DNA of 64,000 nucleotides, taken from sequence record LR756504.1. The stretch is one strand, 5' to 3'. Both the position numbers and the translations under genes were made by a program. Numbering within the stretch: position 1 is the first letter of the stretch; every line of letters begins with the position of its first letter. Of this stretch, positions 7,400-11,673 are shown piece after piece. The notes beneath the pieces are model-generated. The model searched no databases. It saw only the letters and a list, made by a program, of their open reading frames with translations, and was not told the origin of the DNA.

Positions 7400-8581
7400 T
7401 TAAACCTTATCAATAGAAAACATTCCTAATTTCTTCAAACCTAATTCTAAATCCTCCATTAATGGTTTATACATCTCTTGGTTCTCAGGATTATCCTTGA
7501 TATGAAATTTCAAATACATCTGATTAATAGTTTTACACGAATCAATCAATTCATCAAAAAATATAGCAGGTGAAAAATTATCTTTCGCTTTTAAAAATTT
7601 AAACTTCATATGGAAACTATTAAAATCATCTTTCAATTCCACTTTCATACCAGCACTTTTTAATTTAGCTAAAGTATAACTAACATATAAACCATAACTT
7701 GTTTTCACATTAGCAAATTGATCTAAATCAATCTTCTTATCCGAACCAGGTGCATACTTCAAAAATTGACCAGCAATAACATTATAAACTAATTCTAAGT
7801 TATTAAATTCTTTCATAAGCATATCAATAACATCTTGCATCCATATAACATTACCAAGACTTGAACTCATTTTACCAAATGAATCTTTACTTTTAGCAAG
7901 TACTAATCCCAAACCGATATGCTTTATGTCAGGAAATATTTCTTTAAGTATAGAAAAGTGTGGTGCTTGTTCTAATCCTGTAATGTAAATAGTCGGAGCA
8001 TTTAATTTAGATGCTAATGCAACATCTTGATAAAAATATGTTGTAGCACCTGTTGATTTAATTCCAACTATTTTATTCTCACCTACATTAAATATTTTAG
8101 TTCCAATATAATCACCTTCACCATCATGTAATAATTCTTTATTATCTAACTCTTGATTTGATGCATAATAAATATCACCTACATTATAATTAAATTCTTT
8201 ACAATATGATAAATATTTATCGAATGCATCTTGCTTCTCCACTTTACCATCTAACGTATCACCAAGTATAGCGATAGTTTGTTCAGCATACCCAAAGTTT
8301 TGAATAGCTTTAGCTATAACAAGATTCGAGAGATGTCCAATATGGCAATATTTATTTAAATTTGGGCTGTAGCCATCTAAATATTTAAAATACGGAGTGG
8401 AAATAAAAAAATCTTCTAAATTAGAAGGTAGGCAAATATTTGTAAAACCTTTGCTTTCTTCGGTTTTAAATCCCCAAAAATTTATCCACTCCTGTATTTC
8501 ATGTTTTGGTTTTCCGTAAACACATAATCCGCTTCCGAACTGTTTAGGAATTATATTAATATCATTTATGCTAATTTTCAT
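7400..8581 (-). CDS. argS: Arginyl-tRNA synthetase-like protein (shortened, 393 aa)
   Basis: SPNLNKYCHIGHLSN (class I HIGH), KSTGATTYFYQDVA, GKMSSS (KMSKS-like), DALR-like C-terminal helical region; last gene of a tRNA unit containing tRNA-Arg. Confidence 0.8.
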   Translation of the reverse strand: MKISINDINIIPKQFGSGLCVYGKPKHEIQEWINFWGFKTEESKGFTNICLPSNLEDFFISTPYFKYLDGYSPNLNKYCHIGHLSNLVIAKAIQNFGYAEQTIAILGDTLDGKVEKQDAFDKYLSYCKEFNYNVGDIYYASNQELDNKELLHDGEGDYIGTKIFNVGENKIVGIKSTGATTYFYQDVALASKLNAPTIYITGLEQAPHFSILKEIFPDIKHIGLGLVLAKSKDSFGKMSSSLGNVIWMQDVIDMLMKEFNNLELVYNVIAGQFLKYAPGSDKKIDLDQFANVKTSYGLYVSYTLAKLKSAGMKVELKDDFNSFHMKFKFLKAKDNFSPAIFFDELIDSCKTINQMYLKFHIKDNPENQEMYKPLMEDLELGLKKLGMFSIDKV

Positions 8582-8596
8582 AATCTATTTCTTCTG

Positions 8597-8670
8597 TAGC
8601 AATAATTGGACTTGAACCAATAATCTCTGCCTTATGAGAGCAGCGTGTTAGCCAATTACACTATATTGCT
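8597..8670 (-). tRNA. tRNA with CAT anticodon (elongator Met or Ile2)
   Basis: Cloverleaf AGCAATA/TATTGCT, anticodon arm CTGCT-CTCATAA-GGCAG, T loop TTCAAGT; no initiator features; CCA not encoded. Confidence 0.88.
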
Positions 8671-8675
8671 ATTAG

Positions 8676-8747
8676 TAGTCTCGGTGTGAATTGAACACAC
8701 GACATCTTCCTTATCAGAGAAGCATTCTACCACTGAATTACGAGACT
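8676..8747 (-). tRNA. tRNA-Ile(GAT)
   Basis: AGTCTCG/CGAGACT acceptor, CTTCT-CTGATAA-GGAAG anticodon arm, GTGTG-TTCAATT-CACAC T arm. Confidence 0.9.
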
Positions 8748-8922
8748 ATTTATTTTTACTATTTCTTATTTCCAATCCATTCTTTTTTAATTCTTCAATT
8801 ACATAATACCAATCAACATTAATCGGTGGAGCATAATCATCATCATTAAAATAATGTTCTTCTATTACTATCTCTAAATGTGTAAATATTCTTTTTAATC
8901 TTTCCACTATATTTTTTTTCAT
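8746..8922 (-). CDS. Small hypothetical protein (58 aa) inside the tRNA unit
   Basis: Manual translation MKKNIVERLKRIFTHLEIV...NSKNK; exactly fills the gap between tRNA-Arg and tRNA-Ile. Confidence 0.55.
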   Translation of the reverse strand: MKKNIVERLKRIFTHLEIVIEEHYFNDDDYAPPINVDWYYVIEELKKNGLEIRNSKNK

Positions 8923-8930
8923 TACTCATG

Positions 8931-9003
8931 TACCCAATCCAAGATTCAAACTTGGACTAATCACTTAGAAGGAGATTGTGCTATTCAATTACACCAATCG
9001 GGC
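8931..9003 (-). tRNA. tRNA-Arg(TCT)
   Basis: GCCCGAT/ATTGGGT acceptor, anticodon loop CTTCTAA, CCAAG-TTTGAAT-CTTGG T arm. Confidence 0.88.
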
Positions 9004-9007
9004 ATAT

Positions 9008-9040
9008 AAACAAAAAACCCAAGCTTTATTTGCTTGGGTT
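9008..9040 (-). terminator. Attenuator terminator hairpin (Arg/Ile/Met unit)
   Basis: AACCCAAGC-AAATAAA-GCTTGGGTT followed by TTTTGTTT, ending a few nt before tRNA-Arg(TCT). Confidence 0.85.
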
Positions 9041-9069
9041 CGAATTTCTTTTTAAAAGACAATATTCTA

Positions 9070-9129
9070 TCACCCAAGCATTTTTGGTCTAATAATTCTC
9101 ATTCTAATAATCATTGCTATAGTTTTCAT
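9070..9129 (-). CDS. Leader peptide MKTIAMIIRMRIIRPKMLG (attenuator, Arg/Ile/Met)
   Basis: 19-codon ORF with nine consecutive Met/Ile/Arg codons; its 3' end (TGCTTGGGT) is complementary to the terminator 5' arm. Confidence 0.8.
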   Translation of the reverse strand: MKTIAMIIRMRIIRPKMLG

Positions 9130-9193
9130 AATATTATTTGTCTTATTCTTTAAACGATATAACTTATATATTGTTTTATTATTTTACTTTTTG

Positions 9194-9266
9194 AACCTTC
9201 TAAGGGAATCGAACCCCTATTCTCTGATTCGTATTCAGAAGTCTTAATCCGTTAGACGAAGAAGGT
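9194..9266 (-). tRNA. tRNA-Arg(ACG)
   Basis: ACCTTCT/AGAAGGT acceptor, TCTGA-ATACGAA-TCAGA anticodon arm, AGGGG-TTCGATT-CCCTT T arm. Confidence 0.88.
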
Positions 9267-9312
9267 ATTTTTAATCATTTAATATATCATCAATCTTATC
9301 TAAGAATCCATG

Positions 9313-9984: not shown

Positions 9985-10027
9985 TTTCTAAACATTTTCA
10001 TTTATATGAAATATTTAGAAAAAGTTT
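9984..10027 (-). promoter_or_regulatory. Hairpin over the HNH translation initiation region with an embedded promoter
   Basis: Imperfect long stem TTTTCTAAATATTTCAT/ATGAAAATGTTTAGAAAA ending at the start codon; AAACTT-N15-TATAAA with the -10 element in the loop. Confidence 0.55.
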
Positions 10028-10028
10028 G

Positions 10029-10115
10029 AGCCTGTAGAGAGATTCGAACTCCCGTGTGGTTTATCACCATCCTGGTTACAAATCAGGTGCAATCGGCCAT
10101 CTATGCGATACAGGC
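10029..10115 (-). tRNA. tRNA-Thr(TGT) with long variable arm
   Basis: GCCTGTA/TACAGGC acceptor, CCTGA-TTTGTAA-CCAGG anticodon arm, 17-nt variable arm, 87 nt. Confidence 0.82.
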
Positions 10116-10121
10116 ATTTTG

Positions 10122-10208
10122 AGGGAGGGGTGGGATTCAAACCCACGATGGAATATTAATTCACCAGATTAACAGTCTGGACTTTTCGGTCTCTAAAGCA
10201 ACCCTCCC
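10122..10208 (-). tRNA. tRNA-Asn(GTT) with long variable arm
   Basis: GGGAGGG/CCCTCCC acceptor, CCAGA-CTGTTAA-TCTGG anticodon arm, 17-nt variable arm, U73. Confidence 0.82.
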
Positions 10209-10214
10209 TTATAA

Positions 10215-11375
10215 TTAAAATTTAAATTCAATCAAATCTTTTTTATCAATACTAATTTGTGAATTATCTTTCAAATTTTTAATTGATACTTTATTTTCAT
10301 TTACTTCTCTTTTTCCTATTACAATTAAATATTGAGCTTTTCTTTCATATAATTCAGCAATTTTAGAATTTATTTTTTCTGATCTTATATCTAATTTAAC
10401 TCTATATTTCTTTTTAAGAATATCATATATTTCTTTACAATATTCATCTTGTTCATTACTTATTCCTGCTATTACAATTTGTTCAGGTGCTAACCAAAAT
10501 GGTAACCAACCATCACTATTCTCAAGTAGTATTCCTATAAATCTTTCCATAGAACCTAAGATTGCTCTATGTATCATTACAGGATTTTCTTTTTCACCTT
10601 CTTGGTTTACATAGAATGCATCTAGCCTAACAGGAAGATTGAAATCCAATTGCAAAGTTCCACACTGCCATTCTCTACCTAAACTATCTTTGAGAATGAA
10701 TTCTAATTTAGGACCATAAAATGCACCTTCACCTTTATTCAATTCCCACTTCAAATTCTTAGAAGCTTCTTTTAAACTACTCTCAGCTAAATCCCACAAT
10801 TCATCACTACCTATTCTTTTTTCTGGTCTATCACTAAGCTTTACTTCAACTTCTTTAAATCCAAATTCACTATACACATCAATTAATAATTTACAAAACT
10901 TCTCAGCTTCTTCAACTATTTGTTCTTTCATACAGAATATATGAGCATCATCTTGTACAAAAGAACGCAATCTGAATAATCCGTTTAATGATCCTGAATT
11001 TTCATTTCTATGACAAGAACCAAATTCACTCATTCTAATTGGTAATTCTTTATAAGAAACTATTCCTTGTTTAAATATTTCTATATGACAGGGACAATTC
11101 ATTGGTTTAATTGCTAATTCTTTATCTTCATCCTTTACGATAAACATATTTTCTTTAAACTTACTCCAATGTCCACTCTTCTCCCATAATTTCTTATCAA
11201 CCAATTGTGGACTTTTTACTTCAATATAATCTTGCTCCGATATTTTCTCTCTTATGTAATTCTCAATTAATCTATACAAGACATATCCGTTATGATGCCA
11301 AAACACAGAGCCTTGACTTTCTTCTTGAAAGTGAAATAAATTCATCTTTCTACCTATTATTCTATGATCTTCCAT
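10215..11375 (-). CDS. thrS: Threonyl-tRNA synthetase, catalytic plus anticodon-binding domains only
   Basis: DHRIIG start of the core, [54 protein letters not shown]; no N-terminal TGS/editing domains. Confidence 0.95.
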
Positions 11376-11376
11376 G

Positions 11377-11447
11377 AGCCTTCTACGGAAATCGGATCCG
11401 TGTTACATCCATACCAAAGATGTGTTCTACCACTGAACTAAAAAGGC
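11377..11447 (-). tRNA. tRNA-Thr(GGT)
   Basis: GCCTTTT/AGAAGGC acceptor, CATCT-TTGGTAT-GGATG anticodon arm, ACGGA-TCCGATT-TCCGT T arm (atypical T loop). Confidence 0.8.
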
Positions 11448-11450
11448 ATA

Positions 11451-11484
11451 TAAAACAAAAAACCCGAAGTTTATCGCTTCGGGC
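11451..11484 (-). terminator. Attenuator terminator hairpin (Thr/Asn unit)
   Basis: GCCCGAAG-CGATAAA-CTTCGGGT followed by TTTTTGTTTT, just before tRNA-Thr(GGT). Confidence 0.85.
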
Positions 11485-11510
11485 TTTCTATTATAAAGTT
11501 TTTTAATTAA

Positions 11511-11606
11511 TTATCTTTTCATAAAAGACAATACTTTATCAGAAAGCCCAAGAGTTGTTCTCGTGCGATTAATATTATTATTCATATTTCTGATAATTGT
11601 TGTCAT
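11511..11606 (-). CDS. Leader peptide MTTIIRNMNNNINRTRTTLGLSDKVLSFMKR (attenuator, Thr/Asn/Arg)
   Basis: 31-codon ORF; first 18 codons are only Met/Thr/Ile/Arg/Asn; contains GGGCTTTCT, complementary to AGAAAGCCC overlapping the terminator 5' arm. Confidence 0.8.
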   Translation of the reverse strand: MTTIIRNMNNNINRTRTTLGLSDKVLSFMKR

Positions 11607-11673
11607 TGTCTTAGTTATTTAAATATTATAACGTATATATCTTTCTTTTGTTCTTTCTTTTAGGAATTATTTT

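Follow-up and report, generated by a model that had tools for sequence, protein, structure and literature searches.

A 64,000-nt stretch of DNA (the window), identical to positions 124001-188000 of sequence record LR756504.1 as placed by the offset of the tRNA coordinates, holds two neighboring cassettes of transfer RNA (tRNA) and aminoacyl-tRNA synthetase genes, each introduced by a short leader open reading frame (ORF) and an intrinsic terminator. LR756504.1 is a 636,363-bp genome labelled 'uncultured phage', with 27% G+C and the standard bacterial code. The two cassettes share one build: a short ORF, a stretch able to base-pair with the terminator's 5' arm, a GC hairpin with a U-tract, and a tRNA gene 10-13 nt after the tail. 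An earlier note on this DNA described them as a single re-tuned attenuator module controlling tRNA-plus-synthetase cassettes. Both leaders and all of their module elements lie on the minus strand of the window, so the 'start' and 'end' of that note run against the direction of transcription. The cassette that comes first in transcription is called module 2 here, the one behind it module 1.

Module 2 is preceded by a promoter-like box, ATATATACGTTATAAT (11625-11640, read directly), and a box of this type also stands before three other modules of LR756504.1 (M3, M4 and M6, described below). The leader ORF (11511-11606), recognized as a frame and by its codons, encodes MTTIIRNMNNNINRTRTTLGLSDKVLSFMKR up to its stop codon and begins with MTTIIRNMNNNINRTRTT. 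Codons 2-18 are exclusively those for Thr, Asn, Ile, Arg or Met, and the nucleotide stretch reads CTTGGGCTTTCTGATAAAGTATTGTCTTTTATGAAAAGATAATT. These are the amino acids of the module 2 tRNAs combined with those of the downstream module 1. Within the ORF, region 2, CTTGGGCTTTCT (11541-11552, direct reading), is the predicted 5' strand of an antiterminator; it pairs with AGAAAGCCCGAAG of the terminator 5' arm in a duplex of -18.3 kcal/mol (genome scan). A conserved box, TATTGTCTTTTA (11522-11533, exact search), pairs in the fold with AAGACAAUG (11604-11612) and so sequesters the leader start codon. Terminator 2 (11448-11489, from the fold) has a 5' arm with an A-rich extension (11477-11489), a loop (11470-11476), a 3' arm (11462-11469), and a U-tract with the tail GTTTTATATG at its end. 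The hairpin proper (11462-11484) reads GCCCGAAG-CGATAAA-CTTCGGGT and is followed by TTTTTGTTTTATATG and then by a tRNA-Thr from 11447. It is present in the minimum-free-energy and centroid structures alike, and the fold of the whole leader has a z of -4.5.

Behind terminator 2 lie, in order, tRNA-Thr(GGT) (11376-11447; ARAGORN, 58.6 bits in Rfam), a gene for a truncated threonyl-tRNA synthetase (ThrRS) of 386 amino acids (10215-11375), tRNA-Asn(GTT) (10121-10208), tRNA-Thr(TGT) (10028-10115), an HNH-like endonuclease ORF found by domain search (9451-9984), a 143-nt tRNA-like element (9313-9455), tRNA-Arg(ACG) (9193-9266) and then module 1; ARAGORN and Rfam agree on the last three tRNAs named. 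By its domain matches the synthetase is certainly a ThrRS (PF00587 with E 4e-51, PF03129, and TIGR00418 with 476.5 bits against a cut-off of 383.65, aligned over profile positions 171-559). It consists of the catalytic core and the anticodon-binding domain, without the N-terminal editing domains. The tRNA-Thr(TGT) and tRNA-Asn(GTT) that adjoin this shortened enzyme each measure 88 nt and have long variable arms, an unusual trait for bacterial tRNAs of these identities; another part of LR756504.1 has one tRNA-Lys(TTT) that is likewise 89 nt. HNH-like ORFs are scattered among the tRNA genes here and in other clusters of the genome, as expected for homing endonucleases. The 143-nt element overlaps the stop codon of the HNH-like ORF and matches no Rfam family. 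Its acceptor stem and T arm are intact, ARAGORN reads it, when introns are allowed, as a tRNA-Asn(GTT) with a 63-nt insert, and it is conserved in two related contigs (L219 and L221).

Module 1 runs from its leader and terminator through tRNA-Arg(TCT), which decodes AGA (8930-9003), a 58-amino-acid ORF, tRNA-Ile(GAT) (8675-8747) and a tRNA(CAT) that may be a Met or a lysidine-Ile tRNA (8596-8670) to a 393-amino-acid synthetase gene (7400-8581), the tRNAs again being called by both programs. Leader ORF 1, MKTIAMIIRMRIIRPKMLG followed by a stop (9070-9129, found as leader 2 was), contains AGA three times, ATT four times, ATA once and four internal ATG codons, and its nucleotide stretch reads CTTGGGTGATAGAATATTGTCTTTTAAAAAGAAATT. 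AGA is its only Arg codon; CGC, the codon of tRNA-Arg(ACG), is confined to leader 2. Region 2 of this module, GCTTGGGT (9072-9079, direct reading), overlaps the TGA stop codon (9070-9072) and pairs with the terminator 5' arm ACCCAAGC (-15.9 kcal/mol). It is an exact copy of the terminator 3' arm and therefore competes for the 5' arm. Terminator 1 (9004-9039; terminator scan and fold) ends in a U-tract with the tail GTTTATATG; its hairpin (9017-9039) reads ACCCAAGC-AAATAAA-GCTTGGGT and is followed by TTTTTGTTTATATG and then by tRNA-Arg from 9003. The second copy of TATTGTCTTTTA (9053-9064, exact search) pairs in the fold with AAGACAAAU at 9136-9144.

The 393-amino-acid protein is best described as a compact, ArgRS-like class I synthetase. 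It carries a HIGH-like CHIGH and a KMSSS motif, and scores below the cut-offs of both arginyl families (TIGR00456, 30.5 bits with a cut-off of 262, E 1.2e-7; PF00750, 16.9 bits with a cut-off of 23.3, E 0.003). A profile of 20 family members matches only ArgRS chains in the PDB (E 1.6e-7 to 8e-4), and at least 494 homologues have been detected on huge-phage contigs, many of them with PF00750. In more distant megaphages (about 53% identity) the gene does not adjoin tRNAs, and the tRNA cassette around it is kept by two close relatives only. The claim that each cassette includes a cognate synthetase thus holds within the window, with the ThrRS and the ArgRS-like enzyme, and is not general: cassettes of related contigs have either no synthetase or an Asn/Asp/Lys-type enzyme.

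The sequence elements that the earlier note quoted as common to the two leaders are all present. The 12-mer TATTGTCTTTTA occurs exactly twice in the 64 kb, once per leader, and the tail GGGTTTTTTGTTT(T)ATA occurs four times in a 288-kb IMG/VR record that contains the window, always at such modules. The GC hairpin with its tail running into a tRNA was found at both places as described. When the modules are aligned with their orthologues on two related contigs, CTTGGG, TATTGT and the two arms of the hairpin do not vary, and the orthologous leaders keep their reading frame. A duplicated, re-tuned module is also what further reading of the genome bears out, with one module copied, its middle codon block exchanged, and at least six more copies in LR756504.1. 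In L219 and L221 a gap of only about 25 nt lies between tRNA-Arg(ACG) and the leader 1 ATG, which makes module 1 an attenuator inside the same operon there.

The proposed pairing of AAGACA, just before the start codon, with the conserved TTGTCTT is a less constant feature. AAGACA directly precedes the ATG (11606) in module 2 (11607-11612) and stands 9 nt before the ATG (9129) in module 1 (9139-9144), and in both minimum-free-energy folds it is paired with UUGUCUU. The helix is kept in the module 2 orthologue (L219). Its 5' partner is missing from both module 1 orthologues (L219 and L221), so it is not a defining part of the module. Where present, the helix sequesters the leader start codon and may limit re-initiation. 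It was also considered that the conserved TGATAnAnTATTG might make RNA polymerase pause (G at -11, TG at -1/+1); with so loose a consensus, this is kept as an idea only.

The same device recurs throughout the genome. When the DNA upstream of every tRNA cluster in LR756504.1 was read, six more modules were found, which makes at least eight matched to their tRNA clusters; a further one stands before the gene for EF-G. M3 has the leader MKNLTNIFWHFHF... and is followed by an odd tRNA and then by His and Phe tRNAs; M4 (...IAIVEIAVIGGAEEGV...) by Glu, Ala, Ile(UAU), Val, Gly and Glu; and M5 (...LSLCLSLSLSL...) by four Leu, three Ser and a Cys tRNA. M6 (...KQDKQYQPQYD...) precedes tRNA-Asp, M7 (MKTKKQQYKQYQPQYK...) two Tyr and a Gln tRNA, and M8 (...IIKKKKR...) four tRNA-Lys and a LysRS-like gene. 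These last three follow one another, M6 being upstream of M7 and M8 and M7 upstream of M8, and are nested like modules 2 and 1. Two subfamilies can be told apart by region 2, CTT-GGG/GGA (M1, M2, M3 and M5, the first two being the modules of the window) and GGT-GTA-TAT (M4, M6 and M7). In length and sequence the modules are too diverse to be described by a single covariance model. Jointly, the leaders and clusters of LR756504.1 cover every amino acid except Pro (19 of 20).

The agreement between leader codons and downstream tRNAs was scored as the best 8-codon window of each leader against the downstream anticodons under strict wobble rules. The codons decodable in these windows number 8, 8, 6, 6, 8, 7, 8 and 4 of 8 for M1 to M8. 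None of 20,000 windows from real genes reached the scores of M1, M3, M5 and M7, and the true assignment of leaders to clusters is the single best of 720 permutations. The claim that the control codons of the two leaders in the window match their tRNA sets is thereby upheld, with all eight codons of the best window decodable in each, subject to a more modest agreement at the level of synonymous codons (z 2.2). Judged from these sequences, the match is strong for amino acids, and specificity among synonymous codons is only suggestive. Among the Ile codons, ATA prevails in the leader that precedes tRNA-Ile(UAU), and ATT in the one that precedes tRNA-Ile(GAU).

Matched leaders have also been found in a second huge phage genome, LR745206.1 (634,780 bp). 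Here they precede clusters for His/Phe/Trp/Lys/Ser, Lys, Arg/Ser, Glu/Tyr, Ile/Gly/Ala, Asn/Arg/Leu/Val/Ile/Thr/Met, Pro/Asp/Gln, and Gln, and the true leader is the best for its own tRNA set in 7 of 7 modules. Dozens of further modules were detected in unrelated IMG/VR phages by an exact scan for the terminator tail followed by ARAGORN, a sample that is biased towards one terminator tail. Examples from outside LR756504.1 are a QQQQQQ leader before two tRNA-Gln, LYSYLYLSLS before Leu, Leu, Tyr and Ser tRNAs, and QPQPQQHPQ before Pro, Pro, His and Gln. On megaphage contigs whose relationship was traced by the ArgRS-like protein, GYEAGYAYEG precedes tRNAs for Tyr, Glu, Glu, Gly, Ala and Gly, and a leader of Prevotella phage Lak-B1 precedes those for Trp, Asn, Asn, Val, Ala, Tyr, Asp, Gln and Met. 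When 53 non-redundant modules are taken together, the true leader has a mean rank of 12.0 where 27 would be expected, and none of 20,000 permutations did as well; the same holds (0 of 20,000) for the 39 non-redundant modules outside the two huge genomes and their close kin. Whether leader codons predict downstream anticodons across homologs was the check that the earlier note had proposed, and they do.

The leaders and their promoters show some further regularities. A box GGGA(A)AAC(A/T)TTT...ATATATA(C/A)G stands 10-25 nt before the leader start in both huge phages (11625-11640 and 9157-9172 in the window). In LR745206.1 an additional Bacteroidota-type TAnnTTTG box lies about 40 nt further upstream, which suggests two promoters in tandem before those leaders. 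Among the IMG/VR modules some promoter boxes are of the TAnnTTTG type and others are TTGACA/TAnAAT. Many leaders of unrelated phages (e.g., L048, L075, L112, L118, L138 and L215) begin with a common MK(T/N)x(N/T)(N/T)I before the codon block, and after the variable block many share G-V-Y-(C/S) or V-L-S-(F/L). Such shared ends suggest either that the module has a single origin or that translation initiation imposes the same constraint on all of them.

A second line of evidence comes from an unbiased scan of both huge genomes for a terminator, a short ORF beginning M[KRTN] and an antiterminator of -11 kcal/mol or better, made blind to the downstream genes. It gave 12 matches, all of them before translation genes, eight before tRNAs. 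Matches mostly upstream of unrelated genes, the outcome named in the earlier note as speaking against the idea, are thus clearly not what the genomes contain. In LR745206.1 an Ile-rich leader, MNFNTIIIIRYSIPWSIPIG (381900-382014; L241), lies before an IleRS gene (TIGR00392, 674 bits), and a Val-rich leader, MKTINLNNLVVVNVSV (35741-35851, minus strand; L223), before a 443-amino-acid ValRS-like gene that is followed by MetRS. The remaining two precede EF-G, and a HisRS-like gene with two RNA ligases.

The attenuator directly before EF-G (LR756504.1 67932-68056, minus strand; L012 7932-8056) is of the same build, with the leader MKTVLKFIIKTIIVSRYDRVYID, and may sense the general rate of elongation rather than one tRNA. 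In the RNA-ligase locus (LR745206.1 about 345087-345179; L239 5087-5179) the leader MRALHTYKITIDLG, with codons for His, Thr, Tyr, Lys, Ile and Asp, and its terminator stand before a 67-amino-acid ORF, a HisRS-like fragment and the two RNA ligase genes. This may be a stall-induced operon for tRNA repair.

The alternative pairing is itself specific to each module. A leader region pairs with its own terminator 5' arm at a mean of -12.8 kcal/mol, compared with -8.1 kcal/mol for the arms of other modules, a preference equalled in none of 10,000 permutations. In all eight modules read by hand and in most others, the segment that pairs is located downstream of the codon block, either ahead of the stop codon or overlapping it. 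In an independent family with sigma-70-type promoters, RNAalifold places the helix in 8 of 8 members, with compensatory changes at two pairs.

Both modules of the window therefore combine an ORF with its own start on the same strand, enrichment in cognate codons, an intrinsic terminator and a mutually exclusive antiterminator, the hallmarks of an attenuator. The modules are very probably (roughly 85%) ribosome-mediated leader-peptide attenuators of the trp/his type placed before tRNA and translation-factor genes. The most likely meaning is that the phage makes a tRNA, together with its charging enzyme, only when ribosomes run short of that tRNA.

In such a device transcription would start at the conserved box, and a ribosome would load on the short ORF with its A-rich start region and MK(T/N)-type N-terminus. 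It would then meet a block of codons for exactly those amino acids whose tRNAs lie downstream. If charged tRNAs are plentiful, the ribosome would cover region 2 at the 3' end of the ORF, the hairpin and U-tract would form, and RNA polymerase would halt 10-13 nt before the first tRNA. With any one charged tRNA scarce, the presumed physiological trigger, the ribosome would stall in the codon block and leave region 2 free to pair with the terminator 5' arm. No hairpin would then form, and polymerase would read through into the tRNAs, here with the ThrRS or ArgRS-like gene. The new tRNA would relieve the stall, giving negative feedback on the supply of each tRNA species; since the output would correct the input, the loop would be homeostatic. 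Several amino acids in one leader would amount to OR logic, any single shortage opening the cluster. Nested attenuators would restrict distal genes to their own shortages, as where module 1 would gate the distal part of the module 2 operon.

Several observations weigh against leader-peptide attenuation. About one-quarter of the 53 automatically collected modules have a weak antiterminator (above -9 kcal/mol). Some of these are probably false calls; one real family (MKTxLxHMV...) pairs only by way of an interrupted helix. The stop codon of module 2, like that of several others, comes 30-40 nt after region 2; termination in the fed state would therefore require kinetic coupling rather than a ribosome resting on region 2. 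The synonymous-codon match, mentioned above, amounts to 47 of 71 codons decodable with 38.4 expected. A search of sequencing runs with the DNA of the window returned soil-metagenome DNA runs only and no RNA run. The attenuator also presupposes that whichever RNA polymerase reads these promoters obeys intrinsic terminators. Nor is the device universal, as crAss001 has an array of 23 tRNAs directly behind a promoter, with no leader. No cultured carrier of a module was found among those checked; for example, Tenacibaculum phage PTm1 has no tRNAs and Kolpuevirus OQ198718 no clear module, and a BLAST search of 50,697 phage records with two IMG/VR module families gave nothing useful.

Among the other explanations, the one that survives best keeps translation of the leader and changes the output or its sign, and it is unlikely. 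A stalled ribosome would then mask region 2 and increase termination, or the stall would act through Rho-dependent polarity or on the processing or stability of tRNA precursors. The geometry lends this some footing, since the last control codons abut region 2 (in module 2, ACT stands directly before CTTGGG) and a ribosome stalled there would cover it. The stop codons are often well past region 2, and no role is assigned to the conserved TATTGT box or to the helix sequestering the start codon. Most control codons, however, precede region 2 by 12 nt or more, as is classic for stall-induced antitermination, and the hairpins bear canonical U-tracts. An inverted sign would stop tRNA synthesis exactly when a tRNA is lacking, whereas the classic sign gives a sensible feedback.

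Less probable still is ordinary punctuation, in which the hairpins would be plain terminators or insulators and the short ORFs chance frames in AT-rich spacers. LR756504.1 is indeed AT-rich, with 3,670 ORFs of 15-40 codons, and in Bacteroidota genomes the tail is widespread at terminators of the ordinary kind. Terminators placed directly ahead of a tRNA are nevertheless essentially a phage feature: a same-strand tRNA follows the 17-mer tail within 150 nt at 35 of 115 viral-contig sites, compared with 1 of 103 in bacterial genomes, where the tail more often comes after a tRNA (10 of 103). Chance would also have to produce a leader-anticodon match that no permutation reached and that is replicated in independent genomes, a region 2 complementary to its own terminator, and an unbiased scan whose every match precedes a translation gene. 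Direct sensing of uncharged tRNA by parts of the leader RNA, switching the terminator without translation, would follow the logic of the T-box leaders of Firmicutes (terminator versus antiterminator, synthetase genes downstream) and is scarcely credible here, where no T-box or other Rfam family appears at gathering thresholds, the leaders have only 60-110 nt before the terminator and no evident specifier-loop architecture, and the signal consists of in-frame sense codons for up to seven amino acids, from ATG to stop, which fits decoding and not the binding of a single tRNA.

The best known relatives of these leader-peptide attenuators are found in Proteobacteria, where they control operons of amino acid biosynthesis (trpL, hisL, leuL, thrL, ilvL/ivbL and pheL). 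The phage modules resemble them in the short ORF rich in regulatory codons, the intrinsic terminator, and the exclusive antiterminator, for which the end of the ORF supplies the 5' strand, as well as in multivalent control, seen in thr (Thr and Ile) and ilv (Ile, Leu and Val). The pheL leader is a described example (PMC3082878). Unlike the biosynthetic attenuators, the phage modules regulate tRNA genes, synthetases and EF-G rather than biosynthetic enzymes, and they form a phage-encoded family whose copies within a single genome, re-tuned and partly nested, span 19 of 20 amino acids. At gathering score, none of the leader families in Rfam (His_leader, Thr_leader, Trp_leader, Leu_leader and others) matched in the window or in six further 20-kb stretches with other modules. 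The T-box family (RF00230) was likewise not matched in these stretches, which gave tRNA matches only.

Nearest in logic to the ThrRS and ArgRS-like cassettes, and to the IleRS and ValRS-like leaders of LR745206.1, is pheST of Escherichia coli, a synthetase gene with an attenuator whose leader, pheM, is rich in cognate codons. That is a single bacterial operon in which no tRNA genes are controlled, whereas the first product of a phage module is usually the tRNA itself. T-boxes, which bind uncharged tRNA directly and act without translation, are alike in that tRNA charging feeds back on synthetase expression through a switch between terminator and antiterminator; the difference is that the signal in the phage modules appears to be a translated block of codons. 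tRNA genes are usually regarded as controlled by promoter and growth rate. Full-text literature searches gave no earlier description of attenuators before tRNA genes or in huge phages. Al-Shayeb et al. 2020 cover these 634-kb and 636-kb genomes of the Mahaphage clade with their many tRNAs and synthetases, and their text catalogues the genes without mention of attenuators or leaders (PMC7162821). As far as these searches show, then, the mechanism is a known one and the target is new for bacteria and phages, namely tRNA genes placed under feedback from decoding of their own codons.

A 636-kb genome is among the four largest curated ones reported by Al-Shayeb et al. 2020 (PMC7162821); all of the largest belong to the Mahaphage clade, and hosts among the Bacteroidetes are predicted for those above 634 kb. 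The whole window is contained in one sequencing run only, a soil metagenome. The IMG/VR record that contains the window measures 288,572 bp, and its label gives inverted terminal repeats and 100% completeness; as the identical window lies in the 636,363-bp GenBank genome, that record is a part of LR756504.1. Stop-codon recoding was rejected. Reading TAG as sense raises the open fraction of LR756504.1 merely from 0.625 to 0.644, almost no gain, and table 11 was therefore kept. In the window, 23 bases (63813-63835) are masked as N. A minus-strand tRNA at 12122-12197 has an irregular anticodon loop (ARAGORN anticodon 'tt'), as does one at 281045-281120 of LR756504.1 ('tcta'), and an element at 12393-12467 (minus strand) was detected by Rfam alone (32 bits). 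No tRNA-repair or defence genes were found beside the modules of the window; an M42 aminopeptidase and a NUDIX protein are among the neighbors.

Proposals for what phage tRNAs do include compensation for codon usage, replacement of tRNAs that are lost when the host is shut off, and escape from anticodon nucleases. Any of these could be the purpose of the modules, and the counter-defence against tRNA-depleting immunity that the earlier note favored is plausible. The sole hint towards the sensing of damage is the attenuator before the RNA ligases of LR745206.1; if that leader is a damage sensor, the system would also be an inducible counter-defence. More broadly, the odds tilt slightly towards a translation-supply regulon in huge phages of Bacteroidota and in many unrelated phages with tRNA arrays, built from copied attenuators with rewritten codon blocks, each releasing the matching replacement parts only. 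Copies of the attenuator would then stand before every tRNA cluster, several synthetases, EF-G and tRNA-repair RNA ligases, and lack would be sensed codon by codon, whether it arises from a mismatch in codon usage, host shut-off or anticodon-nuclease defence.

The leaders can also be regarded as a part that is 'programmable' by nature, with a frame that stays constant and a codon block that can be exchanged, and might serve as sensors for the charging of a chosen tRNA. Their peptides would predict the identity of nearby aberrant or unannotated phage tRNAs and synthetases, for instance Trp or Ile for the odd tRNA of M3 and Asn for the 143-nt element (9313-9455). Each attenuator would be a built-in reporter of which tRNAs are scarce during infection, making the competing ideas about phage tRNAs testable. 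If leader-peptide attenuation is indeed at work, phages that carry dozens of tRNAs and synthetases would deploy them on demand, amino acid by amino acid, and not constitutively.

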